From Macrostomum lignano (Eukaryota), in the NCBI GenBank assembly GCA_002269645.1, contig NIVC01003051.1:59029-123028 (forward strand): 64,000 bases of DNA, in the 5' to 3' direction. The notes below the pieces were generated by a model, which was not told where the DNA came from, did not search any database, and was given only the letters and a program-made list of their open reading frames with translations. Numbering within the stretch: position 1 is the first letter of the stretch; each line of letters begins with the position of its first letter. Positions 1,071 through 46,736 of the stretch are shown here, one piece after another. A program made the translations under genes and the position numbers.

Positions 1071-3007
1071 TAAGATATAGCTCTGCCGTGCACGCAATTC
1101 TGAGCTTATGTGAACGGCGGCCGTGCACGCAAGCTCTTCGTTTTCAATTTTCACAGTTTATTTTTTTTTCTATGGCCAACTACAAATATCAGGCGAGGGT
1201 ATTGCTGGTAAGTTAGGCTGTGCCTAAAGATTGCTACATTGAGTTGTTTGTCTAAACATTAACTGCTTTATACAGCAGTTAGTTAGTTAGTTTTTTAGCA
1301 GTATCAAACTTAAGTTAGACCTAAAATTTAGGAAGATGCTTTTTTTTTCAATTTTTCTCTGTTTTATTATAATTTGATAAATAAATAATCTTCAACAAGA
1401 CATACACATTTATTTGAATTTGAAATCAAAAAATTAATTATCAATTACTACTTTTTTAATGTTTTCTTTTGTTAAGCAAAAGTCTATTCTAAACAAAGGC
1501 CTATAGATAGTCAATAAATGTAGGCCCAACTAGCCTATGGTTAGCTTATATAGGATTAAACTTCATATAATGTCAAAATCTAAAAACTAAGGGCAATTTT
1601 TGGCAATCTTCAAGTTTCGTTCGTTAAATTATTTTTTCAATGATTCCTAAACTATCTTGCTCTGAGATGATTATTTTCGAGCTCTCCAGTATACCCAGCC
1701 CTTTCCTAGCTGAGAAAGTAGCAGCTTTGTTAATATTAACCTCTAAGGTACCATAAAGCCGAAAATATAAGATGCAAACAAGCAAAGCTAACATGTAACG
1801 CTAAGTACAAACAGACAGATGCAAAGTAAATGCAAAGTAAAACAACAGATAGGGTAAAGCATCATCAACCGAACATAAAAGTATCATTTTTCAACCTTCT
1901 TTCTTGCATAGCAAAAAAAATTTTATATGTAGTGAAATAAAACTACCCAGAAGTTGTTTAGAACATTTTTTTCTTTTAAATGAATGGTCGCTTTACTTTA
2001 TTGCACAAGTAGAAAAAAAGTTATTGATGATTTTATTTCAAAACCGAACGATGATTCTAGGGTATCTTCAAACGGAACAGGGTATCTGACGTTCAGTTTT
2101 TGTGTTTGAACACTAATAACTTTTTTATTTCTTGTTCGTTTTTTCTGAAATATATATCATTGTAAAGATTAATTCATACTCTTTCTAAAAAGTATAACTT
2201 TTGCACAGATAGATGTAGAAAAATATTGTTTATCTGCATTTGAATATAGTACCCCCCATTGAACAGAAAAATCGTGAATTTTTACTTTTTTGCCATTTCC
2301 TTTAACTCTCTCATGCTAAATTGATAAAATGCTATGTTTTCTACTTATTTTAGATTGTCGAATCGGAAAAGCAATAAAGAATTTTAAAAAACCACAAGTT
2401 CTTTAAAGCAGAGCTGATACTTTGCCCATTTCGGAGTTCTTCTGAAGGACCTACTAATGTTTCAGCTTTAAACATAGGCATTTATTTTGCCATTATTACC
2501 TTGTTTTTGAAAGAAAAAAGTACCTCTAGTATACTTTTAACCTTTTTTTACCATAAAGGTAATATTTTTTCAAAAGTTAAAGAAGAAGAAGAAAGAAAAG
2601 TAAAAAAATGGTAAAAAACGATTTTTTTGCAAACAAATTCTCGTAATTTTTTATTTTATTTCTTCTCATCATACTCGTATATTTTTACTTCAAGTAGTTG
2701 CATGCAAGATGTCAAGAAAAAATGCTGTAAAATCTTAAAATTTTCCGATAAACCATCACCTCGTTCTCAGACTGCAATCACTTGGCCCTCTTGATGTAAC
2801 AACAGGGGGGCCGCCAAAACCATAGGCTCATTGGGTTCATCTGTTTACCCCAGCCTTGTATACATGTAGATTTTTTGCAAATACAAGAAAGAAAAAGCTC
2901 GCAAAAATATTCAAAATCTACTTATATACGCTCGTATATATAAAGTAAAAATTATACATGTATATGTACATGTAGATTGCTATCTGATAATAACCAGCAT
3001 GAAGTCG

Positions 3008-6000
3008 ACAGACAGGCGGCTGATAGAAAGGAGACAGAAAGACGGCTGATAAAGAGAAGATAGACAGGCCACTGATAGAGAGGAGACAGGCAGGCCGCCA
3101 ATAGAGAGGAGACGGGCGGCTGATAAAGAGGAGAAAGACAGGCCGCTGATAGAGAGGAGATAGACAGGCCGCTGATAGAGAGGAGACAGGCCGCTGATAG
3201 AGAGGAGACAGGCAGGCCGCCGATAGAGAGGAGATAGACAGGCCGCTGATAGAGAGGAGACAGGCAGGCCGCCAATAGAGAGGAGACGGGCGGCTGATAA
3301 AGAGGAGAAAGACAGGCCGCTGATAGAGAGGAGATAGACAGGCCGCTGATAGAGAGGAGACAGGCCGCTGATAGAGAGGAGACAGGCAGGCCGCCGATAG
3401 AGAGGAGATAGACAGGCCGCTGATAGAGAGGAGACAGGCAGGCCGCCGATAGAGAGGAGATAGACAGGCCGCTGATAGAGAGGAGACAGGCAGGCCGCCG
3501 ATAGAGGAGATAGACAGGCCGCTGATAGAGAGGAGACAGGCCGCTGATAGAGAGGAGATAGACAGGCCGCTGATAGAGAGGAGATAGACAGGCCGCTGAT
3601 AGAGAGGAGATAGACAGGCCGCTGATAGAGAGGAGATAGACAGGCCGCTGATAGAGAGGAGATAGACAGGCCGCTGATAGAGAGGAGATAGACAGGCCGC
3701 TGATAGAGAGGAGACAGGCAGGCCGCCGATAGAGGAGATAGACAGGCCGCTGATAGAGAGGAGACAGGCCGCTGATAGAGAGGAGACAGGCCGCTGATAG
3801 TGAGGAGATAGACAGGCCGCTGATAGAGAGGAGACAGGCAGGCCGCTGATAGAGAGGAGATAGACAGGCCGCTGATAGAGAGGAGATAGACAGGCCGCTG
3901 ATAGTGAGGAGACAGGCAGGCCGCCGATAGAGAGGAGACAGGCCGCTGATAGAGAGGAGACAGGCCGCTGATAGAGAGGAGACAGGCAGGCCGCCGATAG
4001 AGAGGAGATAGACAGGCCGCTGATAGAGAGGAGACAGGCAGGCCGCCAATAGAGAGGAGACGGGCGGCTGATAAAGAGGAGAAAGACAGGCCGCTGATAG
4101 AGAGGAGATAGACAGGCCGCTGATAGAGAGGAGACAGGCCGCTGATAGAGAGGAGACAGGCAGGCCGCCGATAGAGAGGAGATAGACAGGCCGCTGATAG
4201 AGAGGAGACAGGCAGGCCGCCGATAGAGAGGAGATAGACAGGCCGCTGATAGAGAGGAGACAGGCAGGCCGCCGATAGAGGAGATAGACAGGCCGCTGAT
4301 AGAGAGGAGACAGGCCGCTGATAGAGAGGAGATAGACAGGCCGCTGATAGAGAGGAGATAGACAGGCCGCTGATAGAGAGGAGATAGACAGGCCGCTGAT
4401 AGAGAGGAGATAGACAGGCCGCTGATAGAGAGGAGTTAGACAGGCCGCTGATAGAGAGGAGATAGACAGGCCGCTGATAGAGAGGAGACAGGCAGGCCGC
4501 CGATAGAGGAGATAGACAGGCCGCTGATAGAGAGGAGACAGGCCGCTGATAGAGAGGAGACAGGCCGCTGATAGTGAGGAGATAGACAGGCCGCTGATAG
4601 AGAGGAGACAGGCAGGCCGCCGATAGAGAGGAGATAGACAGGCCGCTGATAGAGAGGAGACAGGCAGGCCGCCGATAGAGGAGATAGACAGGCCGCTGAT
4701 AGAGAGGAGACAGGCCGCTGATAGAGAGGAGATAGACAGGCCGCTGATAGAGAGGAGATAGACAGGCCGCTGATAGAGAGGAGATAGACAGGCCGCTGAT
4801 AGAGAGGAGACAGGCAGGCGGCTGATGGAGAGGAGACAGGCAGGCCTCCGATAGAGAGGAGATAGACAGGCCGCTGATAGAGAGGAGACGGGCGGCTGAT
4901 AGAGAGGAGATAGACAGGCCGCCGATAGAGAGGAGATAGACAGGCCGCTGATAGAGAGGAGACGGGCCGCTGATAGAGAGGAGATAGACAGGCCGCTGAT
5001 AGAGAGGAGATAGACAGGCCGCTGATAGAGAGGAGATAGACAGGCCGCTGATAGAGAGGAGATAGACAGGCCGCCGATAGAGAGGAGATAGACAGGCCGC
5101 TGATAGAGAGGAGACGGGCCGCTGATAGAGAGGAGATAGACAGGCCGCTGATAGAGAGGAGATAGACAGGCCGCTGATAGAGAGGAGATAGACAGGCCGC
5201 TGATAGAGAGGAGATAGACAGGCCGCTGATAGAGAGGAGATAGACAGGCCGCTGATAGTGAGGAGACAGGCAGGCCGCCGATAGAGAGGAGACAGGCCGC
5301 TGATAGAGAGGAGACAGGCCGCTGATAGAGAGGAGACAGGCAGGCCGCCGATAGAGAGGAGATAGACAGGCCGCCGATAGAGAGGAGACAGGCAGGCCGC
5401 CGATAGAGAGGAGACAGGCAGGCCGCCGATAGAGAGGAGATAGACAGGCCGCTGATAGAGAGGAGATAGACAGGCCGCTGATAGAGAGGAGATAGACAGG
5501 CCGCTAATAGAGAGGAGATAGACAGGCCGCTGATAGAGAGGAGACAGGCAGGCCGCCGATAGAGAGGAGACAGGCCGCTGATAGAGAGGAGACAGGCAGG
5601 CCGCCGATAGAGAGGAGATAGACAGGCCGCCGATAGAGAGGAGATAGACAGGCCGCTGATAGAGAGGAGATAGACAGGCCGCCGATAGAGAGGAGACAGG
5701 CCGCTGATAGAGATAGACAAACCGCCGATAGAGAGGAGATAGACAGGCCGCTGATAGAAAGGAGACAGGCAGGCCGCCGATAGAGAGGAGATAGACAGGC
5801 CGCTGATAGAGAGGAGATAGACAGGCCGCTGATAGAGAGGAGATAGACAGGCCGCTGATAGAGATAGACAGGCCGCTGATAGAGAGGAGACAGGCAGGCC
5901 GCTGATAGAGATAGACAGGCCGCTGATAGAGAGGAGATAGACAGGCCGCTGATAGAGATAGACAGGCCGCTGATAGAGAGGAGATAGACAGGCCGCTGAT

Positions 6001-6060
6001 AGAGAGGAGACGGTCGGCTGATAGAGAGGAGACAGGCGGCTGATGGAGAGATAGAGGCCG
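3008..6060. repeat. 3-kb minisatellite, 22-26-bp units (GACAGGCCGCTGATAGAGAGGAGATA and variants)
   Basis: Tandem array with interspersed unit variants, read directly. Confidence 0.97.
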
Positions 6061-6601
6061 CTAACGTAGACTATGAATACAAAGTCAATAATTAGAAGCA
6101 AAATATTGAAGCGTTTCGCGAAGGCAGTAGTTTTCCGGATGTCCGCTCTCGAAACGATGTTGCAGATGTAAGTTGATATTGATGAGCCTTGAAAATCAAA
6201 TTTCTAACGTAGCTAGGGCCAATTTTTTTCAACATGATTTACATATTTTAAACGCATGAATGGACGTTGGAAAGTTGATTGGTGCCGCAGGAAAGCAAAC
6301 AGAAACAGCCAATCCTCATGACTGCGCAAGGAATTCGGCTAACCAATGACAGCACGAGGAGAACTGGTCATGTCTGCGTAGGCCAAATTTTGTCCTCGTC
6401 GTTCAGTTTTTGAAATCTGGATGCAAAAACTTCAGATGGGCATTATCCATCTCTCACTCTAGCCACATCTATACCTAGCGCTTTTTGATTTACAGTTGGA
6501 ATCCCAAATTCTGGATCAGCCAAAGGATTTTTTATGCTTAAATCTGCTGACACTGGGACTAGAATAAGCCAGCGGATCCTTTCTCCCTATCCACTCCTTT
6601 T

Positions 6602-11212: not shown

Positions 11213-11991
11213 TTGCTTCGCTGTTAACCGGCGCTAGAGCGCTAGACTTGGAGAAAGCTCTCGACAAGTCCTCACGAGGCGGTTCTGAGGAAAAATTCAG
11301 ACAGACGGGCCTGCATTCGTTAATATAGAACGCGGAGGGTGGAGCGTTTGGGCATTCCGTGGCTTGACCATGGAACTGCAGCCGAAAAGTGCGGATAATG
11401 ATGCACAACAGATATTGATTAAACATGGGGGAAAGAGTAGCTTGTACGAAGCGCCGACAGTCGCCTCAAGCCACTAGTGACAATAACATGCCAAATTTGG
11501 GCTTGTGCGCACAAGGCTGCACGTGAGGGAGGGTTCAGCTCGGGACACGGGGTCCGCGAAACCCTCAGTCTAAAAATAGAATGACGCATGGGGAGAGGCT
11601 CGGACGCAGGAGGAACGAGAGAGCAGAAGGGGGAAGGGTCCAGAGAGCGCACGGGGGAGGAGTGCGGCTAACTAGACTTGCGTACACTGAGCGATTGCCC
11701 GTGTGGCCATCTGATCAGGTTTTTCGCCCGGTAGGCGATCGGGATTTTTGCCCGGTTTGTAATACATTTTTTCCTATCTAAAAACCCGAAAATCCTCGGG
11801 AAAGTGGTCTCGAAAACGGACGAAGACGGCAGTTTCGTCTGGTTGTTCGTCAGGAATTTCGTAGAGGACATCAGGTATTTTCTCGGGTTTCTCTTCGCCT
11901 ACTCAAACTGATGAGTACCCTGAATAAAACCCGACAAATGACCGGATGAAAGTGCAATAGCAGAACCCGGCAAATAACCGTGGCAAAATCT

Positions 11992-12278
11992 GACTAAAAC
12001 CTAACGAAAGCGACACGACGACCCAACCGGACGAATATCCGGAGCAAAATCAGACTAAAACCTAACGAAAGCGACACGACGACCCAACCGGACGAATATC
12101 TGGAGCAAAATCAGACTAAAACCTAACGAAAGCGACACGACGACCCAACCGGACGAATATCCGGAGCAAAATCAGACTAAAACCTAACGAAAGCGACACG
12201 ACGACCCAACCGGACGAATATCTGGAGCAAAAAGACTAAAACCTAACGAAAGCGACACGACGATCAAACCGGACGAAA
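11992..12278. repeat. Subterminal 61-bp tandem repeat of the CACTA element (about 4.7 copies)
   Basis: Units start at 11992, 12053, 12114, 12175 and 12234 (GACTAAAACCTAACGAAAGCGACACGACG...). Confidence 0.92.
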
Positions 12279-12574
12279 AACCCTGCATCCCTATCGAATT
12301 GTGTCTACTCTCGGAAATATGTAGTGCCGACTTAGTAAAACATCTACAGTGCGCTTCTGTCAACGGATACCGTGAAGAGTAAAGAAGTAAGACAATTGTC
12401 AGTCAGTGTTAATACAAAATATGTAACGTTCCATCTTGCAATTCATCAAACTGTTCCAAATCGCCTACAAGATCAATATACTCCTCTGTTTTTTTATTCC
12501 AAAGATGTTGTAGAATACAGTCAGTAGGCGCATAGTCGCTAGTCATCTAGGCGCATAAATGCGGGAATTTAAAA

Positions 12575-14419
12575 TCACTTCTGACTGGCCAAAAGTATGT
12601 TCAGAAAGTCGCCGCAGCTGACTGTGCCGTCCAATGCGCTCTGATCGTCGTCCCCCTCCAGATGCCGCATTTCGACCCCTCTGGCATTTCCGGCGTCATC
12701 GCCGTCATTGGCGTCAGATGCAGCTGTTGTATTCGAGAGGGTTGGCTGACAGACTTCGCGGCTCCGAGCAGAGTCAGCGGAGTCTATAATGACGACTGTT
12801 GTTGCCTTCGGCTTTGGCGGTTTCGGCTGCTTCCGCTGGGGGGAGGGGCGGAGCGCGTTGGGAGTTCCAGTCTCTGCCGCGCAGTCGCAGTGCATTGCGT
12901 GAACGCCTGACTTAGACTGTCGGCAGTGCACTGCACCCCGGCGTTCGCGAGCCACACACGTACTGCAGCCAATTTTCCCGGGTTTGCGGGTGAAGATTTG
13001 GCCTGACCGGGCGCCTTGCGCCCGGACAGTGTGCAGCAGGCGAACTCCCTGTCCGTGAAGACGGCACGCAGGGCAGCTCGGAGAAGCAGTAAGTTTTGCG
13101 TCCTCGCCATCCTGTTTGGCTGGCACTTTTTTGCAGGCTTCTAGCCGATCTTCCGCATCGTGCCGCTTATTCAAAGCTACCTTAACGAAGCCCTGCTGCT
13201 CAGAGAATGGCACAAGAAAAGCAGCTGTTAGGTCAACGTTCGGCGTGGCGGCGTCGCAGGCATCTTTCAGAGCGCTCGTCTGCGCTGCGGACAAGCTCTG
13301 CGTTACAGTGAAGGACATGGCGTCCTGCCTGGAATCGCTGGCGTCGCCGTCATCACCGTCATTGGTGTCACATGCAGCTTTTGTACTCGAGCGGGCCGGC
13401 TGAGAGACTTCGCGATCGCGGGCATTCTGGGAAAGCAGCTCTGACCCCTGAATAAGCAGCGAGTTGCACTGCTGCATGCTGCTGACCAGCAGCACGTTAC
13501 GATGCTGCTCGTCCTCCAGTTGGCGTAAAAGCGTCCGCTCCATACGATTTGCGACACGAAGCTGCTCCGTTAATAGTCGGACGCTTTCTCGCTGATTCGT
13601 TTCTTCAACTATGCTGTGCTGTAACTGGCTCCCTAGAAAAGTATGCGGTGGTTCAAACAAAAAAGGCACTATACCCGACCTGAAAGTGCAGAAGTAACGA
13701 CCAACAATTGATGGCACTCACGCAGGGTGTCTATAAGCGACGACTGTCGCTCGTTCTCTATAGCAAACGTCCGGCAGGATGCACAGGCACGTGGAAGTTC
13801 CGATGGCTGAGCGTGTACGTTTCCTAGGACCGCTGTGCCGGTCGCGATGCTTCTGGAAGCGAACGGCCCACGTACTAGTGTCCCGAGCCATTTTTTCGCG
13901 GCCTTCCTGTTCGCCTTAGCGACGACAATTAAGACTTCGCTGCCGACATCGACGTTACTCGGGGACTCGCGTTTGCGTCCAACAATGTCATCGCGCGTGC
14001 TGACAACTTCTGTTTTTTTCGAAATAGTTGGAGTACTTAAAAATAAACAATCGCGGTACCGCTTCACGTTCGTAGGGCACCATGTCATGCTGTATGAAAA
14101 CGTCATCCCGTTGGGTGCCCTCTGCGACAGCAGACGAAGAAGGGCCCGAAGTCTGTGCAGCAGACATGGTGTCAATATCTTCGATGGCTGACAATAGCGG
14201 ATCCTGCAGTCGACGTGATTTCTCGGCAGTACGACCGAGAAATTGACTCAATGACTCATCGTCATCAGTCACAGCTTTGCGCTTCTTTCCACCGGACTTA
14301 CTCGACGGCGCCTTTGTTGGAGCTGATTTGGAGGTCGGCTTCGACTTCGACTTTGAAGTGGACGTGGAATTTGATTTCGACTTGCCGACTACGGCAGTAG
14401 TCTTCTTTCCTGTGCCCAT
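12575..14419 (-). CDS. CACTA accessory gene (TnpA-like), BEN-domain protein, about 584 aa after repairing frameshifts
   Basis: ATG at 14419; +1 shift in the T7 run at 14013-14019; GT-AG intron 13721-13633 joins the frames (TL|RSQLQH); BEN-like segment LLRAALRAVFTDREFACCTLSGRKAP...NPGKLAAVRVWL...AFTQCTATARQR at about 13098-12868, in a different frame from the 380-aa ORF. Confidence 0.65.
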
Positions 14420-14654
14420 TAGGATTAGAGCAGCTGAAAAAGGTGAGTTTTTGTGTCAATACTGTGTTCTGTGTTCACATGGGTGAAATCTAATTGTACT
14501 CGTACGTTACTTTAACTAGGCCTGGACTCAAGAGTAACAATTAAGGCTGTCGGTTTCCTCCTCAATCAAAAAGTCCGTACAAATTGTGCCGGCAACAAGG
14601 CCTTGTGTATTTATCAGCATATGCTGGTATACATACAAACGTGCATGTCTAACG

Positions 14655-14829
14655 TCCATCATCTCAATGTCATCATCATCTCAATGTCATCATCATCTCA
14701 ATGTCGTCATCATCTCAATGTCGTCATCATCTCAATGACGTCATCATCTCAATGTCGTCATCATCTCAATGTCGTCATCATCTCAATGTCATCATCATCT
14801 CAATGTCGTCATCATCTCAATGTCATCAA
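14655..14829. repeat. Tandem CATCATCTCAATGT(CGT) repeat between the CACTA cargo genes
   Basis: 14/17-bp units read directly. Confidence 0.9.
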
Positions 14830-14870
14830 TCCATCAATTGAGGCAGTCTCCAGTCCATCAATCGCAGTAG

Positions 14871-15649
14871 TCACTCGTATTCAGTGCGGGGTCTCGGTGA
14901 CAGACCCCGAAGCGGCCTTCGACGCCGCTTCCTCACTTTCAATTGATCCAACGGTACGGAAGGTGGTGATGGCGGCATTTCAATCGCGAAGAAGTTTGGC
15001 GCTTGCACGATCCGCCTGTGTCGGTGGCGGCCGTGCAGCGCTAAGCGGCGTGCTCGGCTAGTCGGCGACAGCTCCGCGTACCATGAGGCGCAGTCCGGGC
15101 AAGTTTGCGCAGGTAGTAGGCGTCGCTCGTCCCAACGCCTCGGCTCAAATGACGGTGGAGCAGCCGGTGGTAGCCGGTTGTAGTCCTCCCACGTATACTT
15201 GGACTCAGCAGTGGCTCGCGCGCAGGTCGACGTTGGTGGCGGGCCGGGAGAGTGACCACCGATTGTGGTGTCGCTGCCGTCATCGGAGTCGACGTTGGCC
15301 TTGGGACCGTCATGAAGCGGCCAAGTTAAGGCTGTAGAAGCAGAGACTGGGACGCAGCCTGAGTCGACGTTGGTGGCGGGCCGGGAGAGTGACCACCGAT
15401 TGTGGTGTCGCTGCCGTCATCGGAGTCGACGTTGGCCTTGGGACCGTCATGCAGCGGCCAAGTAAAGGCTGTAGAAGCAGTAAGCAGAGACTGGGACGCA
15501 GCGTGAGTCGACGTTGGTGGCGGGCCGGCAGAGTGACCACCGCTTGTGGTGTCGCTGCCGTCATCGGAGTCGACGTTGGCACGGGCATCCCCGTCAGCGA
15601 TCATTCGGTCGAAAAGTTTTGGCCAGTCAATTATGGGGCGATCCGACAT
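14871..15649 (-). CDS. CtIP/Ctp1/Sae2-like small protein inside the CACTA element (261 aa if a 7-bp deletion is restored)
   Basis: ATG at 15649 (MSDRPIIDWPKLFDRM), then 144-bp repeat units, then after a frameshift near 15343: FEPRRWDERRLLPAQTCPDCASWYAELSPTSRARRLALHGRHRHRRIVQAPNFFAIEMPPSPP...KRRRRPLRGLSPRPRTEYE, stop at 14873-14871. Matches the CtIP C-terminal pattern ERRKLxGHTCxxC..YY...SRHR...PxNFW...FP. Confidence 0.75.
15226..15585. repeat. In-frame 144-bp coding repeat (about 2.5 copies; one copy is 137 bp)
   Basis: GTCGACGTTGGTGGCGGG recurs at 15226, 15363 and 15507 (offsets 137 and 144); encodes ANVDSDDGSDTT.GGHS.GPPPTST. Confidence 0.9.
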
Positions 15650-16080
15650 GATTTAAATTCAATGGGGTCAGTCTGAAAATGGTTTTGACCACCTATAAGA
15701 ATATTCTTATTCTTATGCATATGAACACAACAAAAAATAAAGTGAATATAGTATACAGAAGTAACACGTAAATAAGCTACATATGACTCATAAAGCATCT
15801 CATCCAGATGCTTCTGGAAACCGGACTCAATTTTTTGGTTTAATTGCATCTACTATTACGTGCATATATACACATTTTTACAAAATCGCTAACAATTAGA
15901 ATGACTACTACAGTTTGTTAAAAAGTATAATAGAAATTTGATTATTTTCTTGCCAATCGTAAAGTAAGGAAAAAACGAAAGGAAAATACGTTTTATGCTG
16001 GCAATCAGTTATCCTAGCCTGTCAATCAGTTATCCCAGCCTGTCAATCAGTTATCCCATTGCCACGGACGCCAGCAGACT

Positions 16081-18885
16081 CTACGAATAGCCCAACTGCG
16101 GATGGGCCAGCAGAGCTACTTTTGTGTCGGTGACGACACAGACGCCACGAAACTGTGGCAGCCCCACATGAATCGGGTCGCCGAGGTAGCTCAAGTCGCC
16201 GAAGGGATCGCATGCGAATACTCGGAAGTGCGCGAGTCGACAGCCTCGATTAGGTGACGTTGTGGCAACCTGTGCTAGTTCCTCCAGCGGGTCGACGGCC
16301 GCGAGAACTGGCAGTACGAGCAGTCCGAGCCTAACCTGCTCACCTTGACATTCGATGGTTTGCACTCGGCAGAATCGGAAATCCGTCGTAGTGTCACCTT
16401 CGATGGCCACGAAGCCTGCCGCATCCTGACATCCGGGAGTGAAAATTCGTATTGTCCAACCGGATTTCAGAGTGGCACTGTGCCATCCGACTTGCCAGCG
16501 CTTCGGTCGACGAAGCACGACATCTGGAAGGGTGAGTACTTCTGTTCGACGGAATAATTCCTCTTCGTCTTGCTGATCCCCGTGCCCGATCAGTCGCGCT
16601 CGCGCTTGGATGGTGCCGATGTGGCGCTCCACGGCGCCAACCAGCTCGACGTCGGTGCGCCGCGTCCCATGCAGGCGTTTTTGCAGGCGCAAGTGCGTGC
16701 TTTCGAAAATTCCAGCCGATAGGCGGTGCGCAGAGCCGGCCAGATGGACGTATGTCAGCATGTGGCAGCACACCTGATGAGCATTATAGGTTAGTGCTCT
16801 TAAGGAGTACAACCTATACAGTTTGTCGTGGAAGTGGCGCAATGCAATCTCTACGTGCCGCAACTCAGACAGAGGCGCATAATCGGCAGTCATCCAGAAC
16901 ACTGCAGCGGAAAGAAGTAACAGATGCTGGTAGTGGGCGGGTGGTAGGACGGCTTCCAAAACGAGGGGGCCGTAGGCCATCAGCCACATTTCAAACTCGT
17001 GCCCACGGAAATTGCGGAGGTCACTCAGTGGACGCACTTCATGGCGTTGGACGTTGATGGGCAGCCGGATGCGGAGCAGCAGCTCATCGACCTGATGTTG
17101 AAGCCGGTGCAGGTCCGGACAATTCGTTTCTCCTCGGTCCGGCTTCTCGGCCCGCACCAGGAATAATTGGTACATTATCATCCGGACCAGACCTAGGTGC
17201 AGCTGGTGGAGATAACATGGCGGACATCGCGCAAGTCAAAACCCGGGAGGCGTCCTAACGGAGAGTGGCCTCGGACACCCAATGTGTCTGTGTTCTGGTG
17301 CCGAGCACCTGCTAGGTGTTGCTCCGCTAATCTGCGCGTATCTGCCATGCTCCGCAGGACAGTTTGCAGACAACCTAGACGTCGAGCAGCATTCTGCATT
17401 GCTGGCGTTAAGCCGACGTCGAAGACACGCCCAGAGCCTGAAGGATGAAGACGCGTAGCAATGTAGCACTTCTCGCAGCCGTAGATAGCCGTGCATCGTC
17501 GCATGCGGAGCGCATCTGCACGAGCCGGTGAGTCGAACATTGCTAGCAACGGATGGAAGCGTATCGTACGCTGAACTCCATCAGCGTCAGTGTACGTTAC
17601 GCCCCGGATGCGTAAAGAAATCAGCGCGTCGACGACCACCGGAAGGAAAGCCGCTGAACTCACTTTGGTCTTAGCAGCCCAGAGCCCACAGATTATGACA
17701 TAGCGCAACTTGACATGATCGTGAACCTCGTTGATGCTTAAGTAGGCTGGACACACCTCTACCTTGCTGGTTGACCGTGCTGGAAACCCATCAGAGCTCA
17801 GAGTATACGAGAGGTCGCTCTTAGCAACTAGGTTTATCGACTCCCGAAACTGTCTGTACAGGTGACTGTTGTAGAAATGGATGGTGTCTTCGTGCGGATT
17901 GAAGTCGGAAGGAAAAGTCAAATTATGCAGCAGTCCACATGACTCTATGTAAGTTCGGATCTGCTTTCTAATGTTGAAAACCCAGAAGTTTGCGACTCTC
18001 ATTGATCCGCAGTCTCTGCAATGTCCACCGTTTTGACTGCAGTCTCCTCGGTTGTTTACGTAGCACTCGTTGCACACAGTGACGCATTTTTCGGAGCCGA
18101 TGTAACTCTGGGCGGACTTTAGCGTCCGCCACATAGTTCTTTCAGTGCGCGGAATTCGACTTCCCGGAACCAGACAATGCACAAGACGTAGAAGTCTGGT
18201 TATTTTTTTACTTGGGATTCCAAGATCAATGGCGCAGTCGTTGATATGACACACAGCTTCACCAATGGTGCCCGTGATGGGTTCGCCGTTGTGCCACGGT
18301 AGCTGTAGCCAGGGATCAAGAACTGGCTGTTCCTGGCCATCGCTGTCGCTGGAGTCAAGTGACTCAGCGTCACTGCCGTCACTGGAGTCTGTGGGAAACG
18401 CGCGATAGTTTTTCTGTATCAACGGATATCGGGGCCGCATTTTGCAGATCCTCGATGCTACTCACCATGCTCAGGGGGCTCAGAGTCGGGTGTCTCTGTA
18501 CCGTCGCTGCCATTGCGGCCAGCGCTGTTTACGGACTCAGCGTCACTGCGGCTTTGGTCGCCTCCACTGTTGCCGTCACTGGAGTCTGTGGGAAACGCGC
18601 GATAGTTTTTCTGTATCAACGGATATCGGGGCCGCTTTTTGCAGATCCTCGATGCTACTCACCATGCTCGGAGGGCTCACTGTCACCGGTGTCTACGGAC
18701 TCGGCACCTCTGAGAAGCTGCGACGATGCTGCGACGACAGTGCTACTGCTGCGCGAAGTACTAGGTACAGCGCGACTAACCGGGGAACGCGGTCGGTCAG
18801 TCAACTCAGCGCAGGCCGCGTCAATATTTTGTTGCAGTCGTCGCGCCCGCTGATAAAATCGTCTGTCGCGTCGTGATCGCTCCAT
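16081..18885 (-). CDS. EnSpm/CACTA transposase (Transposase_21/DUF4218-type), 3 exons, about 883 aa, one frameshift
   Basis: Exons 18885-18663, 18585-18466 and 18388-16081 with GTGAGT...CACAG introns; motifs LSSDGFP, GLWAAK..FLPVVV..L, FDSPARA, GCEKC, GVRGHSPL..LPGFD, YLHQLHLG, TYNAHQVCCHM...SA..FES; one base missing at about 17220. Confidence 0.9.
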
Positions 18886-20942
18886 TGTAATTATTTCAGG
18901 TTTCTTAATGCAGCTGGAAATTCATGGAACTTTATTAACAAAGGCTGCTACGTACGCTACGCCTAGCGGGCCAATTCGGGGATGGGACTTTGCTTATACA
19001 TTTTTGTAAAAGAGGAAATCAACGTTGGAATCCCACAGTAGCATGCAGCCTTCAGAAATGTGTGCGATGACAGCATTAAAATGACAATATTTTTTCTCAG
19101 TTTACGTGAACTACGCTCGTAATGTAACATACGAAGACGCTCATATGATATATATATAAAGATGAGCGGAAAAAATACTGCAAGAGAACAAAACAGGAGC
19201 ACATTACAGGACATACAATTACAAGAAAATCTTCATGTCAATTGTCAATTATACACTGTGTCTCCCATACCATTTTCAACCCAATCCTGAATTAAAGGCT
19301 TTCATCAGCTCTTTTCTCCGGCTCTTGTCCAGTCGAAGAACCAGAGAAAGAACCGGGCAAAATTCCAGGCGGAAATGTTATTTCATCCGCTTTTACTCCG
19401 GAATTCCCTGGTTACTAAACTGGTTCCAAACCTGGCGAAGGACCGGGTAAAAAACCAGAGCACTCGTACGGTTTTTCCTCCGGAATTTCGCCTGGTTTAG
19501 AAAGGCAGAGAAAAAACGGATAAATTCGCCTGGTTTATGTTCTTCGCCTGGAAATGGGGCAAAAAACATAGCAAGCCAGAGCAAAACCGGGCGAAAAACC
19601 TGATCGGATGGCCACACGGGTGTACGCGGCAGGCCAGGCAACAACAGTACAGGCAAGCGCCAAATTTGGCGGCTTCCACTAACTAACCCTAGGCTAGGCA
19701 AACTTCCTAATTTCCTATGTTAAAGATTGCGCCATATTGTGCAACTTCTGAGCGCCAAGGAAGGCTGCTTAGAGTGCATGGAGGCAGCAGAAAATTCCTA
19801 TTCCAAATACTAGCAGCGGACAGCAGTGCCTAAGATGTGACTGCGGCCCTATGCTTGCAGCAGAAGGCTGCGGCCACATCACGTCTATGGCTGAAACGCG
19901 AGTGCGCTATGCCCATTGACGCACTCGTCAGCGTGCTAGATTCTTCTTCTTTCGTCTGACATGTTGAAAAAACTGAGTGTGGAACGGCATAGACAGCGCT
20001 TTTTATGGATTTCAGTGCTTAAATGAGTGCTCCAAAGATTAAATTGCCTGCCGGTTTGACACAGTTTTTACCATAGACAACTGGCAGTGAGGCTCAAAAT
20101 GCATGTGTTTTTTCTATCTTGGATTAAATTGCTTGCCCGTAGTCTCTAGCTCGTACTAGCTTGCAAAATGCTATAATAGCCATTAAATAACCTGTCTATG
20201 TCAGAATGTCCGAGGCTGCATTTAATGGTCCCGAGGCCAGCGAAGCGAGCCGAGGACTAGCTTTATTTATGTATCCCCCGTTCGGTATGTTGGCTGCTAG
20301 CGGGGATGAGGGGGCAGATTGCTGGCTGGGGGTGTGGGGGCGAAGCCCCCACATTTAGGCCACAGACAAATTTTAATTTATTTGCATCGATGCAAAGTGA
20401 GGCAAACTAGCAAAAAGTCAAGGGGAACTAAAGTACAAAAGAACTATAAAAAATAACAATAAAAAATGAAAAGTATAAATTACGTTTTTAGTCTATGGCA
20501 CAAAGCTAAAGGCTAATCTAGAAAGAAATTACTGTACGACGAAGTAAAGTTATTTGTGCAGCAACACTGCAAGCCGGGAGACTTATACGACTGAGAGACG
20601 TGCTGATTTTATCGACAAATAAGCCAAGAGATATGTCTGGACAGTCTGGTGCTCGACATCCAATCTTGTCGGATGCAGAAGCTGATGCACTGGTAAGTGC
20701 AACAGTGCCACCAAATACGGTCAAGAAGAGTGCGTGGATGATATCGACGTTTAAAGAGTGGCACGAATGCAAAAAAGAAGACTGGGCAAAGAATGGCGGC
20801 TCCTCTCTGATGGTATTGAAATCTATGGACGAATTTACTAGGTCCGACTTGAACTATTTGCTGAAGCTTTTCATCCTTGAGGTAAGGAATAAGAAGCATG
20901 AGCGCTACTCGGCTGGAACTCTCAAGGACTTCGTGTCTATGC

Positions 20943-22500
20943 CACAGAACATACACAGAATGGCGAATCAGCAGTTCTCTATGAAAGCGAAAATAAATGC
21001 GATTGCACTACTAACGTTGTGAAGCTGATAAGTAGCTGCGATTTTTTAAACGCAAAGTTGAATGTAAAAGTTGAGCTCAAGACAGCCTTTGAAAGCTCTG
21101 AATCCTCGTTTTGACGCTGCAGATGAATGCTGCGCCATCATTGTAATTAATTTGTTCATAACGGTGCGTGCGCAAAGTCATGAGCAGTAGTAACAACTGT
21201 TATAACCTCATTGCCATGTACATGTAAGCTAAAAAACAAAAGTAACAAACATATAACAGCAGGTTAAGTTTTAGCGCTGCACGCAAGGCAGGAAATGCCA
21301 GACGCAACAGAAATAACAAATCTCATGCAATCACACTCATCCTTTTGAACTTCCTCGATTGCTCATTGCAAAATGCTCGCCCGCGCTTTCTCTCCTGAGC
21401 CGCAATCCTGCGCCCATTGCACCAATGGTGCAAGCGCAGCCTCGAGAACAGCCTCACAATGCCCATCACGCATCTCTCTGAGTGCTCAGCGCAATGAGTC
21501 GCAATAATTGGCCTGATGCAATCGGCCAATAATTTGCTGATTCTGTGTGACAAAACAGCATGCATGAACTCTGTCACTTCCAGCAATTTGAATTGGCGTT
21601 CCATCTCAGTGACAGCTCTGATAACTGCTCTACTTGGGGTGACTAAGCTGTCATCCCGCTTGCACTTCAGTCGCAGGAAGCGTGTCCGAATTGCTTTCCC
21701 TTCAGTTCCTGCTGGAACACCTCACACTTGCACTCGGTTTTAAAGAAGCGGAACAGCAACCAACCGCCGACATATGCGCCCTTCTCGTGATCTAAGTCAT
21801 CCGATGTAGCAAAGAGCTCATCACCTGCTTCCGTGAGATCTGAGTCACAAGTGTTGCCCTGCAGGTGGAATGGATCTGGAGCTTCTTGGCTCACTGCAGC
21901 CTTGGATGCTCTCTGGCTGCTGAAAACCGGTGAAATCTAGTGCCCGGCGGACACTTGCCGGCGTAGTTGGGGCATCCGTACGCAGCGCACTGAAGCCTCG
22001 AAGCAGACGCAGTCATGCGAAAACAGTATCACAATAAGCTGCGTATTAAAACTCTAGCAGATATGCCTTCGGTATTACATGTAGCACTTTTGAAGCCAGA
22101 CCTAGCTTCAGCAGCACCAGCTTGGGCCATAGAGAATGCAATATAGCAAAGACAGGCTAGCGCGATCAATAATGCATTTGACCTGCATGCTTTCACGCCA
22201 CGAGCTCGTGCTTGAACGCCCAAGGCATGCTGTCTATGGCACTAACTTAAAGCGCAGCAGAAGGCAGGGCCAGCCTTAAGGTAGTTTCTAAAAATAGCAC
22301 AGTTTAGAAGGGGGTGGGTTGGTTCATCAAGCCTTCCTATATTCTGTGGGACAAACCCGCAATAAATGGCAAAGAATTGGTAAAGTGCCATTCAGCCTAC
22401 TTAGTTTCTCTTCACAACAAGAGTAGCCAGTATAGAATATCATTCTTGTGCAAGAAATTTTCTTAAAATGCGGGATTCGCCATTCTGTGTATATTCTGTG
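20943..22500 (-). mobile_element. P-superfamily (THAP9-like) internal-deletion derivative, 1558 bp
   Basis: 27-bp TIRs CACAGAA(C/T)ATACACAGAATGGCGAATC at 20943-20969 and 22474-22500; 8-bp TSD GTCTATGC at 20935-20942 and 22501-22508; CANRG terminus. Confidence 0.9.
21323..22016 (-). pseudogene. THAP N-terminal fragment next to a P-transposase C-terminal fragment
   Basis: MTASASRLQCAAYGCPNY...GTRFHRF (truncated THAP), then AYVGGWLLFRFFK..CKC, FLRLK...LVTPS..V...EMERQF, RLRLHHWCN; the catalytic core is absent. Confidence 0.75.
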
Positions 22501-24849
22501 GTCTATGCTGCAGTATGAAATGCGCAATGTCTACGGAAAGGACTGGAGCCTTTGGACGGATGTTCAGTTTGCTGAAAGTAGAAAATCGCTGGATGCGGCT
22601 ATGAAGCTATCAACTGCGGAAGGAAAAGGAGTCGGGCTAAAAAAGTCAGAGCCTGTGACGAAATCTATCGAAGATGATTGCTGGAATGCTGGTGTGCTAG
22701 GCTCCCAAAATCCTGAGCAACTAGTTCGCACCGTAATTTGGCTAATTGGCAAGCACTTCGGTCTGCGGGGTGATAGTGAGCTACGTGATTTGGAATTCCA
22801 GTGCGAGATCAATTTGGATGGCAGTGGGATTGAAGAGTGCCTTGATTACGAGGAGTGTCGGCGGACCAAGACGAATCAAGGTGGCCTGAAAGGAATTCAG
22901 AAACAACCGAAAGTAGTCAAAGCTTTCCATGCTGCAGATCCGGAGCAATGCGTTGTGTGCCTATACATCAAGTACGTTTCGTTGCGCCCCGAGAATTGTT
23001 CAAAAGCTTTGTTTCTTGCCGCCAATAAGCACTGGATGGAATCGAACGGAAAAGCCTGGTATAGTGTTCAGCCTATTGGGAAGAACACTATCTCGACAAT
23101 TGTGAAAGCCGCAGTGTCTGAAGTTCGGCCAAACAGCACTGCTCGTTTCTCGAATCAGAGCCTGCGAAAAGCATGTGCTATTCAACTCCACGAGGCTGGT
23201 GTCGAACGCGGAGACATTGCTCAGATCACTGGTCACGCTACTACCTACACGCTACAGGCTCTGGAGAAATACATAGCGCCATCAACAACACGACAGAAGA
23301 TCCAAAGTGCTATTTTGAGTGGAGACGCCACCGAGGCTTCTGCTGCAAGTATCATACAACAGTCTCGTGTTACCGTGTCCGACGTCAATACCGAGGTTTC
23401 TATCGAACCACCTGCTAGTAAGCGCATGCTCATCGAGGCAGACGGTGAAAAAAAACGTTGTGAAAATCACATTCTGTTAGTCATTATAAGTCCGAAACGA
23501 ACTTTATATCACACATTTTGTGTCCTACAGTTGTAATTAAGCTTTTGTGTGCAACACTTTTTGCTAGTTTTTGTTAGTCTATGGTTGTTGTCTCGAATTT
23601 ATCAGCCCGCGGGGCAGCGGGAAATAAATTATTTATTCACCTAGGGAAATAAATGAAAACATGCGTCACATAGACACTCGCCCAGGGCAAAAGGGGGATA
23701 CATATCATATTCCCCACTCATTTAGCTGTCTAGCGGGCAAAAGCAAGAGGTGACTCGTTTATTGACCGAGGCGAAGCCGAGGCCTAGATGCGAGTCTGAA
23801 GCTTATGCTTCAGACCATAGACTAAAATAAACGGAAATAATATATTTATACCCCGTTTGGCCATATTAACATTGTACATTTTAACCATGGAGAAATTTTG
23901 ATTTGATGCCGTGCACAAAAACGACTGTGTTGGGTACTTAAGAGTGAGTGGCTGTCTTTATCTTTACTAAAAATTTTCTGTGACATTTCGAGTTATTGTC
24001 TGCATGGGTGATGTTGATCGCGTCAGCTTTGAATCACTTAGTCTTCCTGAAGTCAAAGCTGTCTTAAGCACAGAATATACACTATTTATGATATACACAG
24101 AATGCTCAATCACGCATTTTGAGAAAATTTCCTGCAAAGAATTACATTCTATACTACATTTACACCTTTTTCTATTCTTTTTGGCAAACGTGCAATCAAA
24201 TTCAAAATCTTTTCATTCAATTCAGACAGTTTGGCCGGACGTGCATTCGATTCCGACAAATGTGCTTTTAAAAGCGACAATTTTCAAACAAAGCAAACAA
24301 GCTACCACGAGAAACCGACACTTTGCAATCAATTCAAACAAATTGCAATCAATTCCGACAGTTGGCTATGAATTGGCTTTTTATGTCCTCCTATCTATGG
24401 CTTTGACTTTGATTGCACGTTTGCCAAAATAGAATGGAAAAAGGAGTAGCTACTCTTGTTGTGAAGAAAAGCTAAGTAGGCTGAATGGCACTTTGTCATG
24501 TTTGTCCGTCCCAGACGGCTTCGTGAGCGGCGCTTACCATAGCTATATTTTAGCAGAGCATATCACTCCCGTTCTATTTTGGGTAGACTGGGAAGCGTAC
24601 GAGTCTGCCCTTCATCTTTGCGTATAAAGCCACCTCCCTCAGTTCTTAATTGTAAGCACTTCTGATTATAGACAAATACGAGTATGTATGCGGCCATAGA
24701 TTAAAACACGGGCAAGCCAACAGAAAGTGAGGTTGAGGCATGGTAAGCACCGTTAAGGCGTAAAGCCGGAGCAAGTGACAGAATCATTCACAGCAATTAC
24801 TCAGAATGCCAAATCGACAATTTAAAAAATCGGTGCAAGAAAAGAAACC

Positions 24850-28375: not shown

Positions 28376-29997
28376 ATGCAGCTGATAAAAAATGCATTGA
28401 GTGGCACATCAGCGCACGGTCTGTCGAGAGTTACGTCCAACAAGCCAATCTACGTTCGATTAACCTGGTTACTAATATTCCTAATTATGTTTGGCCTGTT
28501 TCTTAAAGGACTCGTTGAGTTCGTGGAGAAGTTGCGGGTGAAAAAAGTAACCAGCTCGATAGAATCTGACGGTGTTAAGTTTCGATTTCCGGACATATTT
28601 GCCTGCTTTGAGAATCCCATCTCTAGCAGCTATTCGGCCACATTGGACTACGCCACAGCTTCTGCTATTAATACCAGCTTCAGTATGGTTGATACAGAGC
28701 TCCAGTTTCATGCCATTAAAGAAAACCTATCTCAAGAGAATACTGCAAAGCTGATGATTGAAAAGAGCTTTGTATATGTGTTTGGGTTGTCTTATAAACT
28801 TTTGTTTGACTCGTTGGCTCATCGAGTTGAGCAGTCGTTGATCTCTAGCACCATTGTCTACATGAGCGAAATCGGAGACGCCAAATTAGCAGAGATCGAA
28901 GCTTATCCGTTTAACCATCCGCAGTACCTTCGCTGCCTACGTTGGACCATCAACAAAACTTGGCAGGATAAAATGACTACAGTCGAAGCGTGGGCCGGAC
29001 TCACTATCACCTTACTGTTGGACACTAGCGGCTCCTTGCTGGAGCTCAAAGGTGGTTATAAAATACCGCGTAGAACTTTCATTCCGGACGGCTCGGAGAT
29101 CCCGATATCTGATTGGACTCTAGCAATCAAGGACTACAAACAGGCTGACAGGCCGATTGGACTGAAGGTGTTTTTGAGTCCACCTGGCGAATATCCTTCG
29201 GACTTTGTGAGTTCATTCTCTCTTGGGCCGGGTAGATATCACACTGTGGAGATCAAAATGTCAGCTTACTCCTTCAAGGAGGATCAATTTAAGTGCATTG
29301 GCGACGGCCATCCCGCTATTCAGTTCACTAATCCGTACGATCTGTCTGCCTACAGTCACGTGTATAGCTACTCCTACTGCTACTACTATGAATACCACCG
29401 TTTGAACCAGCTGCTGTTAAACCTATCTGGTAACATCAGTCCTTTACCATGGCCCCTGAGAGATTTCAAGTACATGTTTAACATATCTTCAAGGCCGCAC
29501 TACGGTAGCATGGATTACGAACAATCGGTGTGGGACCAGCAAGGAGAGCTGGCCGAAAAAGAGAAACCTGCAAGCAGAAGCGACCCTGCAGCACGCTGGA
29601 CTACAGTGCCAGCGTATCCAGCGCTGACTGGCCCACGCACAGCTCTCTGGCTCCTTTTATCAACAGCTCAGTGAGGCAGGCTTGGATGCGAGCCAAAGAC
29701 AGGAACCTCAGCGTACCGGCTCTTGACTTTTTGCTAACTAGCAACTCTTCCCGTGTTGCCTCGTACGTCCGCGACAACCTGTTAAAAGTGCACTTCAAGC
29801 CTAGTAGCGTCAGTAGTGACAAAGTCACATTCTCTATCGACTACGGATTTTCAAATTTCGTCTCGGAAGTTGGCGGCATTATGGGCATCTATCTGGGCAT
29901 GTCGTTGCTGACCCTATGCGAGCTGCTGGAACTGCTGTACGACATTTTTGCACGATATTGTTTGAAGAACGACAATGAATTGCCTGCCGAAAAGTGA
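28376..29997 (+). CDS. DEG/ENaC (amiloride-sensitive) channel subunit, intronless, about 540 aa with one frameshift
   Basis: TSAHG motif, TM1 RLTWLLIF, FPDIFAC..NP, C..PC...Y..S.S...WP, TM2 SEVGGIMGIYLGMSLLTLCELLE; one extra A in the A5 run at 29556-29560 joins the two ORFs. Confidence 0.9.
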
Positions 29998-33400: not shown

Positions 33401-35094
33401 CCGGAGTCAGCGACTACTCAGTGCTGATGTCTATGGCGGCTGCTGGCAAGCGGGGCAACATCGACTCGCAGATCCGCGATCTGCTGGCTGACATGAAGAA
33501 CTCGCCGTACGGACGTCTGCCCCCATCTCTTGCCGTTTTTCCGTTTGGCAAGGCAGTTGACAACGACAGATCTTGTGAGCGTGTTGACAGCCACGCTGTC
33601 AGTTATACTGTCATCTGTACCGCCAAATTGGCTCATATACTGTCATGCTGTCATCTATACTGTCATGCTGTCATCTATACTGTCATGCTGTCATCTATAC
33701 TGTCACACTGTCATCTATACTGTCACACTGTCATCTATACTGTCATACTGTCATCTATACTGTCATGCTGTCATCTATACTGTCATGCTGTCATCGATAC
33801 TGTCATGCTGTCATATATACTATCATGCTGTCATCTATACTGTCATGCTGTCATCTATACTGTCATGCTGTCATCTATACTGTCATGCTGTCATCGATAC
33901 TGTCACACTGTCATCTATACTGTCATGCTGTCATCTATACTGTCATGCTGTCATCGATACTGTCATGCTGTCATATATACTATCATGCTGTCATCTATAC
34001 TGTCATGCTGTCATCTATACTGTCATGCTGTCATCTATACTGTCACACTGTCATCTATACTGTCATGCTGTCATCTATACTGTCATGCTGTCATCTATAC
34101 TGTCACACTGTCATCTATACTGTCATGCTGTCATATATACTGTCACACTGTCATCTATACTGTCATGCTGTCATCTATACTGTCATGCTGTCATCGATAC
34201 TGTCACACTGTCATCTATACTATCATGCTGTCATCTATACTGTCATGCTGTCATCTATACTGTCATGCTGTCATATATACTATCATGCTGTCATCTATAC
34301 TGTCATGCTGTCATCTATACTGTCATGCTGTCATCTATACTGTCACACTGTCATCTATACTGTCATGCTGTCATCTATACTGTCACACTGTCATCTATAC
34401 TGTCATGCTGTCATCTATACTGTCATGCTGTCATCGATACTGTCACACTGTCATCTATACTGTCATGCTGTCATCGATACTGTCACACTGTCATCTATAC
34501 TGTCATGCTGTCATCTATACTGTCATGCTGTCATCTATACTGTCATGCTGTCATCTATTCTGTCATGCTGTCATCTATACTGTCATGCTGTCATCGATAC
34601 TGTCACACTGTCATCTATACTGTCATGCTGTCATCGATACTGTCACACTGTCATCTATACTGTCATGCTGTCATCTATACTGTCATGCTGTCATCTATAC
34701 TGTCATGCTGTCATCTATTCTGTCATGCTGTCAGACACCCACCCATTTATTTTTTCTGCTAATTGGTATGGCCAGAAAAGCGGAAAACTATAGGCGCACT
34801 TCAGCCTTCTTTGAAAGTGAATTCCAATGCAACTCATCAGTCGCACTAATTAGCTAATCCACTTATAGCAAATAATTCAACCTGCTCAAAAAAATTAATT
34901 TTCCAGTCGAAGACACCCGACCGCAAGACCTGGTCCACTCCCTGGTGGCCACTTTTACGTCTAATCTGATCTACACGATTACCCAGATGGCCATGTTTTA
35001 CGGAGCCCGGAGTATTCGATTCGCTGGCGGCTCCTTTAACCACGAATGTCCTCGGGCCGAGCTGATCAAGACTGCCAAGTTGTTCACCGCCATT
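30469..35094 (+). CDS. Divergent type II pantothenate kinase (fumble)-like protein, 5 exons found, 3' end unresolved
   Basis: Phase-consistent exons 30469-30556, 31056-31311, 31731-31968, 33319-33574 and 34907-35094 (342 aa): IGIDFGTERTKLAY, VTGARA, FVDEASSQCRGASFL, FPCLLGVFGS, SGKSFLGICQLFTG, GKRGNIDSQIRD, FPFGKA, QDLVHSL...SNL, IRFAGGSF. Confidence 0.8.
32038..33176. repeat. Intronic 25-bp minisatellite CCCTATCCCAATCTCCATCTCACT(C/T)
   Basis: Fills PanK-like intron 3. Confidence 0.97.
33632..34733. repeat. Intronic 20-bp minisatellite CTGTCATCTATACTGTCATG (10-bp subunits)
   Basis: Fills PanK-like intron 4. Confidence 0.97.

Positions 35095-40653: not shown

Positions 40654-46736
<6,083 letters not shown>

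Follow-up and report, generated by a model that had tools for sequence, protein, structure and literature searches.

A frameshifted gene for a short CtIP/Sae2-like protein in a putative CACTA-like transposon of Macrostomum lignano

The window that we describe here is a 64-kb stretch of DNA (64,000 nucleotides, with positions counted from its first letter) from contig NIVC01003051.1 of the flatworm Macrostomum lignano. On its minus strand, at 14871-15649, it hosts a frameshifted gene that we call mini-CtIP. The encoded protein would have a novel N-terminus, followed by three acidic tandem repeat units that are rich in S/T and by a domain related to the C-terminal domain of the DNA end-resection factor CtIP/Sae2. 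It is probable that this gene lies inside a DNA transposon.

The mini-CtIP reading frame

In one frame, the minus strand is free of stop codons from 15416 to 14874. The translation of this frame, ...STALTWPLHDGPKANVDSDDGSDTTIGGHSPGPPPTSTCARATAESKYTWEDYNRLPPAAPPSFEPRRWDERRLLPAQTCPDCASWYAELSPTSRARRLALHGRHRHRRIVQAPNFFAIEMPPSPPSVPLDQLKVRKRRRRPLRGLSPRPRTEYE*, is the peptide quoted in an earlier note on this DNA, and the peptide from the same frame is also given as ...TALTWPLHDGPKANVDSDDGSDTTIGGHSPGPPPTSTCARATAESKYTWEDYNRLPPAAPPSFEPRRWDERRLLPAQTCPDCASWYAELSPTSRARRLALHGRHRHRRIVQAPNFFAIEMPPSPPSVPLDQLKVRKRRRRPLRGLSPRPRTEYE*. The list of open reading frames (ORFs) holds just a 45-amino-acid stub of it, because the first start codon in the frame is a GTG at 15008; no ATG, GTG or TTG is found upstream of that position. 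An ATG further upstream opens a 107-amino-acid ORF (15649..15326, minus strand), which is in a different frame from the CtIP-like segment.

The break between these two frames can be traced to a coding tandem repeat on the minus strand. Tandem Repeats Finder (TRF) reports a 137/144-bp unit in 2.5 copies at 15226-15580; the full unit is 144 bp (48 amino acids), and the sequence DSDDGSDTT is found in each. When the units are aligned, unit 2 lacks seven bases (ACTGCTT), with the gap falling between 15339 and 15338, and this causes the frameshift. Putting the seven bases back gives a single continuous ORF of 261 amino acids, which begins MSDRPIIDWPKLF..., runs through the acidic repeats and continues after the gap in the CtIP-like frame (15338..14874). 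If the defective 137-bp unit is instead taken out in full, the ORF is again intact, this time with 213 amino acids. The translation and the unit alignment therefore agree with the earlier note, which had described a minus-strand frame missing from the ORF track, a 7-bp deletion in a 144-bp repeat and a protein of 261 amino acids upon restoration. A short intron was also considered as the cause of the frame change, and this was ruled out, as there is no canonical donor and hence no short intron able to mend the frame. The repeat units are still 94-97% identical to one another, and the 7-bp lesion is therefore recent.

The acidic S-D-T motif DSDDGSDTT resembles, we presume, motifs of Ctp1 and MDC1 that CK2 phosphorylates and to which the FHA domain of NBS1 binds. 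Directly 3′ of the mini-CtIP stop codon there is a 17-bp minisatellite of 10 copies (14657-14828, minus strand).

Homology to CtIP and Sae2

The CtIP/Sae2-like C-terminal domain occupies positions 14874-15212 of the minus strand. It is 113 amino acids long and includes a CPDC sequence (CxxC), RHR, PNFF and a KRRRRPLR tail. It has been identified with phmmer, with a five-sequence alignment (A1) and with tblastn, in which the host CtIP and a short environmental CtIP matched it.

An exhaustive phmmer search with the CtIP-like peptide of a library of 1.84 billion (1.84e9) representative proteins returned four matches only. The best of these is the M. lignano protein Mlig004387, which is the host CtIP (P0001, with P0005 as its cluster-mate), with an E-value of 8.3e-21 and 56% identity. 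It is followed by the environmental short CtIP (P0002, E 2.8e-9) and by the C-terminus of a frog CtIP (P0004, E 6.4e-4); the remaining match is a Cys-rich repeat protein (E 4e-4). A word-indexed homologue search with the same peptide gave no match.

The earlier note had proposed a comparison with the Pfam SAE2 family (PF08573). This is the sole family that the window peptide matches, with a score of 13.8 bits (E 0.13) against a gathering cut-off of 19.8, and the direct score thus falls short. The bona fide M. lignano CtIP scores just 13.4-14.3 bits with the same model, and therefore the SAE2 model is weak for the flatworm lineage. The more distant relatives pass: P0002 scores 37.6 bits and the frog CtIPs 45-52 bits (51.8 for P0004). 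The homology is upheld through these significant family members, with P0002 serving as the bridge from the flatworm sequences to Pfam SAE2. We consider the homology to be established at the sequence level, by a chain of significant matches and not by the Pfam threshold. P0002 is in itself a complete CtIP of 315 amino acids, with a coiled coil and an SAE2 domain, encoded by a single uninterrupted ORF on a 1.6-kb environmental contig (L003, JGI 3300040801, Ga0450804_1774655).

The landmarks of the family are found in the window peptide in the same order, namely the CxxC, RHR, NF-aromatic and a basic RRxxP tail. In alignment A1 the invariant columns read R, R, L, C..C, L, R, RHR, F, P and RR..P, and these include C39, C42, R63-H64-R65, F75, P81, R97-R98 and P101. 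The claim that the segment has the same order and spacing of CxxC, RHR and NF-aromatic as the C-terminal domain of CtIP/Sae2, made previously from the sequence alone, is borne out by this alignment and by the three phmmer matches to CtIP proteins, and the basic C-terminal tail is a further likeness. The RHR motif contributes to the DNA binding of the CtIP C-terminal domain (PMC11317151).

Besides the sub-threshold Pfam score, there are further differences from CtIP/Sae2. Four residues are deleted ahead of the ERR motif in the window peptide, and the site for cyclin-dependent kinase (CDK) before NFW, an S/T-P sequence, is absent. The alignment has RTPPHFW in P0002 and STPENFW in frog CtIP at this position, where the window peptide has QAPNFF. 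The M. lignano host CtIP also has QAPNFF and also lacks the site, and the loss is therefore a trait of the lineage and is not specific to the mini-form.

A comparison of AlphaFold models had also been suggested. A model of the domain, built with the five-sequence alignment, has a predicted local distance difference test (pLDDT) score of 68.5 and four short helices. Foldseek matched this model to 0 PDB structures, and the PDB sequences, when searched with a profile, yielded chance matches only; therefore there is no solved structure of a CtIP C-terminal domain to compare it with.

A truncated paralogue of the host CtIP gene

The host CtIP gene is found elsewhere in the genome. It is Mlig004387g1/g2 (PAA88737.1 and PAA54340.1), present on two contigs between an acetyl-CoA synthetase (ACS) gene and an EMP24 gene, and it has three coding exons that encode an N-terminal coiled coil and at least 481 amino acids in total. 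Neither the ACS nor the EMP24 neighbour is found in the 64-kb window. When the N-terminal portions of P0005 and P0002 were compared with the window by tblastn, no match was obtained; nothing in the window resembles the N-terminal two-thirds of CtIP, and no N-terminal coiled coil was found there.

The similarity between mini-CtIP and the host protein begins in the middle of the last host exon and covers the last ~100 amino acids of the host protein. Upstream of this point mini-CtIP has its novel N-terminus and the tandem repeats. One candidate explanation, that the segment is the last exon of the host CtIP gene, was ruled out: the real gene is located elsewhere and has other neighbours, and its N-terminal exons are absent here. 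The N-terminal coiled-coil tetramerisation domain of full-length CtIP is not present in the restored 261-amino-acid ORF either.

The host CtIP is the nearest relative of mini-CtIP, with 50-56% identity over the last ~110 amino acids, and mini-CtIP therefore descends from a flatworm CtIP. The two have CPDC, GRHR, VQAPNFFAIEMPP and KRRxRPLR in common. They differ in that the window gene has a novel N-terminus and repeats, has no coiled coil, is saturated at synonymous sites and is found in a transposon-like setting. Judged by its sequence, the window gene is an additional, truncated CtIP paralogue that lacks the N-terminal coiled coil. We are nearly certain that the segment is a paralogue of the CtIP C-terminal domain and distinct from the host gene.

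Selection on the mini-CtIP lineage

The tests of selection consist of a single pairwise comparison, between mini-CtIP and the host CtIP over 113 aligned codons. The two are 50% identical in protein and 53% identical in DNA, with identities of 0.58, 0.67 and 0.35 at codon positions 1, 2 and 3. The proportion of synonymous differences (pS) is 0.79, which is saturated, and that of non-synonymous differences (pN) is 0.36. Under neutral drift of the window gene ever since it separated from the host gene, the third-position distance (d3) would be at most twice the second-position distance (d2). The ratio d3/d2 is 3.4, with a bootstrap 95% interval of 2.06-7.1, and this is above the neutral maximum of 2.

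A second line of evidence comes from 38 columns at which P0002 and the frog CtIPs are all identical. The host protein keeps 21/38 of these and the window protein likewise keeps 21/38. Relative-rate counts were 16 vs 9 and 11 vs 11, neither of which is significant. Synonymous sites are saturated, yet ancestral residues have been kept as well as in the host; the comparison thus points to purifying selection on the mini-CtIP lineage for most of its history, after a long-ago split from CtIP. The 13-amino-acid block VQAPNFFAIEMPP is identical in the two proteins, and 8/39 of its nucleotides differ, all of them synonymously. Recent gene conversion was considered as the source of this identity and was ruled out by these differences.

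Ends of the element

The putative DNA transposon is ~7.9 kb in length (11685-19622), and all of its genes are on the minus strand; between the inverted repeats, this is true of every long reading frame. The left terminal inverted repeat (11685-11732, plus strand) consists of CAC, a 10-11-nt insertion (TGAGCGATTG) and the 35-mer CCCGTGTGGCCATCTGATCAGGTTTTTCGCCCGGT. The right one (19586-19622, minus strand) consists of CA and the 35-mer CCCGTGTGGCCATCCGATCAGGTTTTTCGCCCGGT, when read on the minus strand. The 35-nt inverted repeat (11698-11732 and 19586-19620) is 97% complementary and is unique in the window. The element has 5′-CAC...GTG-3′ ends, with CACTGAGCG... on the left and, as the reverse complement, CACCCGTG... 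on the right. There is a TA at both flanks, which forms part of a palindromic sequence, GCGTA on the left and TACGC on the right.

The regions next to the ends host a shared motif. The 12-mer TTTTYGCCCGGT occurs 6 times in the window, where 0.44 occurrences are expected, and all of them are within ~600 bp of the two ends. In the left subterminal region (11721-12279, plus strand) it is found at 11721(+), 11745(+) and 12268(-), the two outermost copies being plus and the third minus. This region also carries a 61-bp array of 4.9 copies (11983-12277). In the right subterminal region (19352-19597, minus strand) TTTTYGCCCGGT-like motifs are found at 19352, 19442 and 19586, and 3/3 are minus.

A transposase-like gene and a third gene

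The transposase-like gene (16081-18885, minus strand) runs from an ATG at 18885 to a stop codon at 16083-16081 and, if spliced, encodes ~800 amino acids. It has two canonical introns of 77 nt, 18662-18586 and 18465-18389 (GTGAGTAG...TTTCCCACAG). A 197-bp tandem duplication in this gene (18374-18694) has copied an exon together with its 77-nt intron (GTGAGTAG...TTTCCCACAG), and the spliced frame is preserved. By eye, the candidate motifs LSSDGF, MFDSPA, GCEKC (C(2)C), RH.YLH (H(3)H, across the frameshift) and IFES can be recognised. There is a frame change in the long exon, near 17235-17196, and no canonical donor or intron mends it; a short intron at this junction was ruled out on these grounds.

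The third gene (12575-14419, minus strand) would encode ~520-570 amino acids if spliced. It has an 89-nt intron (13721-13633, GTGAGT...TTTTCTAG) and a further frame junction between 14247 and 13991. Frame changes at three places, two in the transposase-like gene and one in the third gene, are thus explained by introns with canonical GTGAGT/GTGAGTAG donors. The N-terminus of the protein is K/S-rich and contains KKRK, and the protein also has a coiled-coil stretch, clusters of Cys and His (CPAC...CSTC...HAMHCDC) and an acidic segment that is duplicated internally. No Pfam match and no detectable relatives were found for it. The third gene may correspond to one for a DNA-binding protein of the TnpA-like kind.

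Acceptor-like ttttcag sites are located 15-25 nt upstream of the ATGs of mini-CtIP (15649) and of the third gene (14419), at 15660-15680 and 14425-14445 on the minus strand. They may be acceptors for the trans-splicing of a spliced leader or for alternative cis-splicing, much like the TnpA/TnpD arrangement of En/Spm.

Class of the element

CAC..GTG termini and C(2)C and H(3-4)H motifs are hallmarks of the CMC (CACTA/EnSpm-Mirage-Chapaev) transposons (PMC4079192, PMC12730594). The window element resembles these in its CAC..GTG termini, its inverted repeats, its subterminal repeats and arrays, and its several spliced genes on one strand. Furthermore, the candidate D, D, C(2)C, H(3)H and E motifs, picked out by eye, follow the order given by PMC12730594. 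Unlike CACTA elements, the ends read CACTG and CACCC rather than CACTA, no 3-bp target-site duplication is visible, and the transposase is unmatched by Pfam or by homology. We therefore retain only part of the earlier label of a "CACTA transposon". The inverted CAC..GTG ends and the subterminal motifs support it; the exact ends and the unrecognised transposase do not, and the label is drawn from anatomy and by-eye motifs. We assign the unit to the CMC/CACTA-like elements with moderate confidence.

Interpretation

On balance, we favour the explanation that 11685-19622 is a decayed CMC/CACTA-like cut-and-paste transposon that carries a transposase, a third gene and a long-constrained, stand-alone mini-CtIP, the latter, when intact, a putative cofactor of the MRE11-RAD50-NBS1 (MRN) complex at transposase-made breaks. 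With a 7-bp deletion in a recently expanded coding repeat and a frameshift in the transposase gene, the locus would be a dead copy of a formerly working mini-CtIP gene. With both of these genes frameshifted, this copy of the element looks dead, unless the frame changes are assembly errors.

A number of points weigh against this explanation. The mini-CtIP gene is broken in the sole copy observed, its SAE2 score is below the gathering cut-off, and the selection tests come from one pair of sequences. The constraint that they point to fits a gene inside a transposon or an ordinary host paralogue alike, and cannot tell these apart. No transposase family was found by Pfam in any of the ORFs of the element or their sub-fragments, up to E = 10; a homologue search with the 415-amino-acid transposase ORF and a PDB sequence search with the joined transposase sequence each gave no match; and a single-sequence AlphaFold model of the transposase ORF was unusable, with a pLDDT of 34. 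Where CMC elements have a target-site duplication of 2-4 bp, there is here just TA/TA outside the CAC/GTG ends. The GCGTA and TACGC flanks are themselves inverted, so that either the target is palindromic or the inverted repeat extends further out. No second copy of any ORF of the element is found within the window, look-ups of five window ORFs and of the M. lignano iGluR as exact proteins matched no record, neither the CtIP domain nor the transposase had relatives in the metagenomes that were scanned, and there is no annotated mini-CtIP-like protein in 15 billion predicted proteins, two M. lignano proteomes included. Based on this one copy, the mobility and the boundaries of the element and the status of mini-CtIP as cargo are tentative.

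A first alternative is that mini-CtIP is, or was, an ordinary host gene for a short CtIP-like protein, perhaps one specific to the germline, that sits amid transposon pieces, the inverted repeats coming from a neighbouring transposase unit or from two insertions. Purifying selection is equally expected for such a gene, the boundaries of the element are drawn from one copy with an ambiguous target-site duplication, and the window is crowded with repeats and other mobile elements. Against this, mini-CtIP is well within the unit, at ~3.2 kb from the left end and ~4 kb from the right end, with same-strand genes on both sides, the unit is uninterrupted by any other host gene, and the 12-nt subterminal motif is confined to the two ends in mirror orientation, as it would be for a single element. 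We consider a host paralogue to be unlikely.

Gene-fragment capture by Pack-MULE/Mutator and plant CACTA elements is well known, and the captured fragments are usually young, parent-like in DNA and neutral. Mini-CtIP resembles these in being part of a host gene within a cut-and-paste element, and it could, in the same manner, be a piece of host CtIP that was passively picked up (transduplication), was never functional and is now decaying. The frameshifted ORF, the single copy, the lack of a matching annotated protein in the searched collection and the restriction of the homology to the last ~100 amino acids of the host protein, from the middle of its last exon, all fit this. What does not fit is that mini-CtIP is ancient and constrained. 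At 53% DNA identity its third positions are saturated, yet it has kept the deeply conserved residues as well as the host has, identical amino-acid blocks differ only synonymously, pS is 0.79 against a pN of 0.36, and a d3/d2 of 3.4 exceeds what neutral drift allows. The disabling lesion is also recent, in a young repeat, and the gene has its own ATG with a splice-acceptor-like ttttcag upstream. Passive capture is improbable in our view.

Finally, an intact mini-CtIP might have been an interfering decoy that competed with the host CtIP for MRN or DNA ends and suppressed resection, favouring end joining after excision or blunting a host response. In favour of this, the N-terminal coiled coil is absent from the ORF and from the whole window, variants of CtIP that lack the N-terminal domain still bind DNA and cannot bridge it (PMC11317151), and the CDK-site TP of frog CtIP and P0002 is missing in QAPNFF. 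Against it, the host M. lignano CtIP shares QAPNFF, and the loss of the site is therefore a trait of the lineage. We consider such a decoy to be very unlikely.

For the favoured explanation, of a transposon with its own resection cofactor, the following mechanism can be proposed. An intact mini-CtIP would bind DNA through its RHR region and would act as a cofactor of the host MRN at breaks made by the transposase. If the ends of these breaks were hairpin-capped or protein-blocked, then clipping would open the donor site to resection-dependent repair. In yeast without Mre11 or Sae2, hairpin ends from hAT excision are not repaired (PMC3299998), and a need for such a factor is therefore plausible. 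Without a tetramerisation domain, mini-CtIP would be monomeric and would not bridge ends. The isolated C-terminal domain of human CtIP is a monomer that binds DNA and cannot bridge it (PMC11317151). The bridging or tethering of DNA ends, which the earlier note had entertained, is for these reasons unlikely; full-length CtIP proteins have the tetramerisation domain, the window protein does not, and bridging is not expected of it.

That mini-CtIP steers the repair of the excision break is offered as a hypothesis only, and activation and dominant-negative interference by it cannot be told apart from the sequence. It is doubtful, in our estimate, that mini-CtIP was a working transposon cargo that acted on break repair. 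We are equally tentative about the broader idea that a flatworm transposon family encodes its own resection cofactor, in which a selected, monomeric CtIP domain, possibly with S-D-T repeats that dock to NBS1, would direct the host MRN at excision breaks; the odds appear to us to be against it.

Transposons with accessory genes of host origin have been described; for example, TET/JBP dioxygenases are encoded by fungal EnSpm, Plavaka, KDZ, hAT and Helitron elements, and SET methyltransferases by oomycete elements (PMC12730594). The window element would resemble these in having a host-derived domain as a separate gene beside the transposase, where it probably serves the element. It differs in that the known cargo acts on epigenetic silencing and is found in many copies, whereas here a cofactor of double-strand-break processing is found in a single copy. 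No report of a transposon-borne CtIP/Sae2 gene was found in the literature, and a paper on the transposons of M. lignano does not mention CMC/CACTA elements. We know of no other eukaryotic transposon with a factor of a double-strand-break repair pathway as its cargo. In short, host-derived transposon cargo is already known, and a CtIP/Sae2 domain as such cargo would be new.

Cut-and-paste transposons rely on host repair, and the pathway that is used decides between loss of the element, restoration of the donor site and a footprint. Known transposon cargo mostly targets silencing (TET/JBP, SET; PMC12730594). If our explanation were true, the CtIP tail encoded by the transposon would give it direct influence over whether a break is resected or its ends are joined. 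Such a protein would also be a minimal CtIP made by nature, with which one could ask what the C-terminal domain does without tetramerisation and how transposase-made ends, whether hairpin or protein-capped, are passed to MRN. The hypothesis is testable in M. lignano, a model animal that regenerates and is used for transgenesis. The value of these ideas hinges on intact copies in the genome, and would be modest for a lone dead locus.

Other features of the window

A second mobile element is located nearby (20600-24494). It has an ORF at 22448-23536 that matches DUF3504 and phage integrase (tyrosine recombinase) in Pfam (E 6e-22). An N-terminal piece is probably encoded at 20600-21022, and there are inverted repeats of 46 nt (22382-22427 and 24449-24494) that are 96% complementary. 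From its sequence, this element looks Crypton-like.

Long minisatellite arrays crowd the window (3010-6010, 32036-37660, 48791-49574, 53114-58047 and others). These have units of 4-146 bp, reach up to 3 kb in length and show strong strand skews. Most of the long ORFs in them are repeat artefacts, including a 1049-amino-acid ORF at 2952-6101.

Two host genes were also noted, both of which appear as long uninterrupted exons. One encodes a DEG/ENaC (ASC) channel (28376-29674, plus strand). The other encodes an ionotropic glutamate receptor (iGluR; 45030-46760, minus strand) that is 98% identical to the M. lignano protein A0A1I8IS65.

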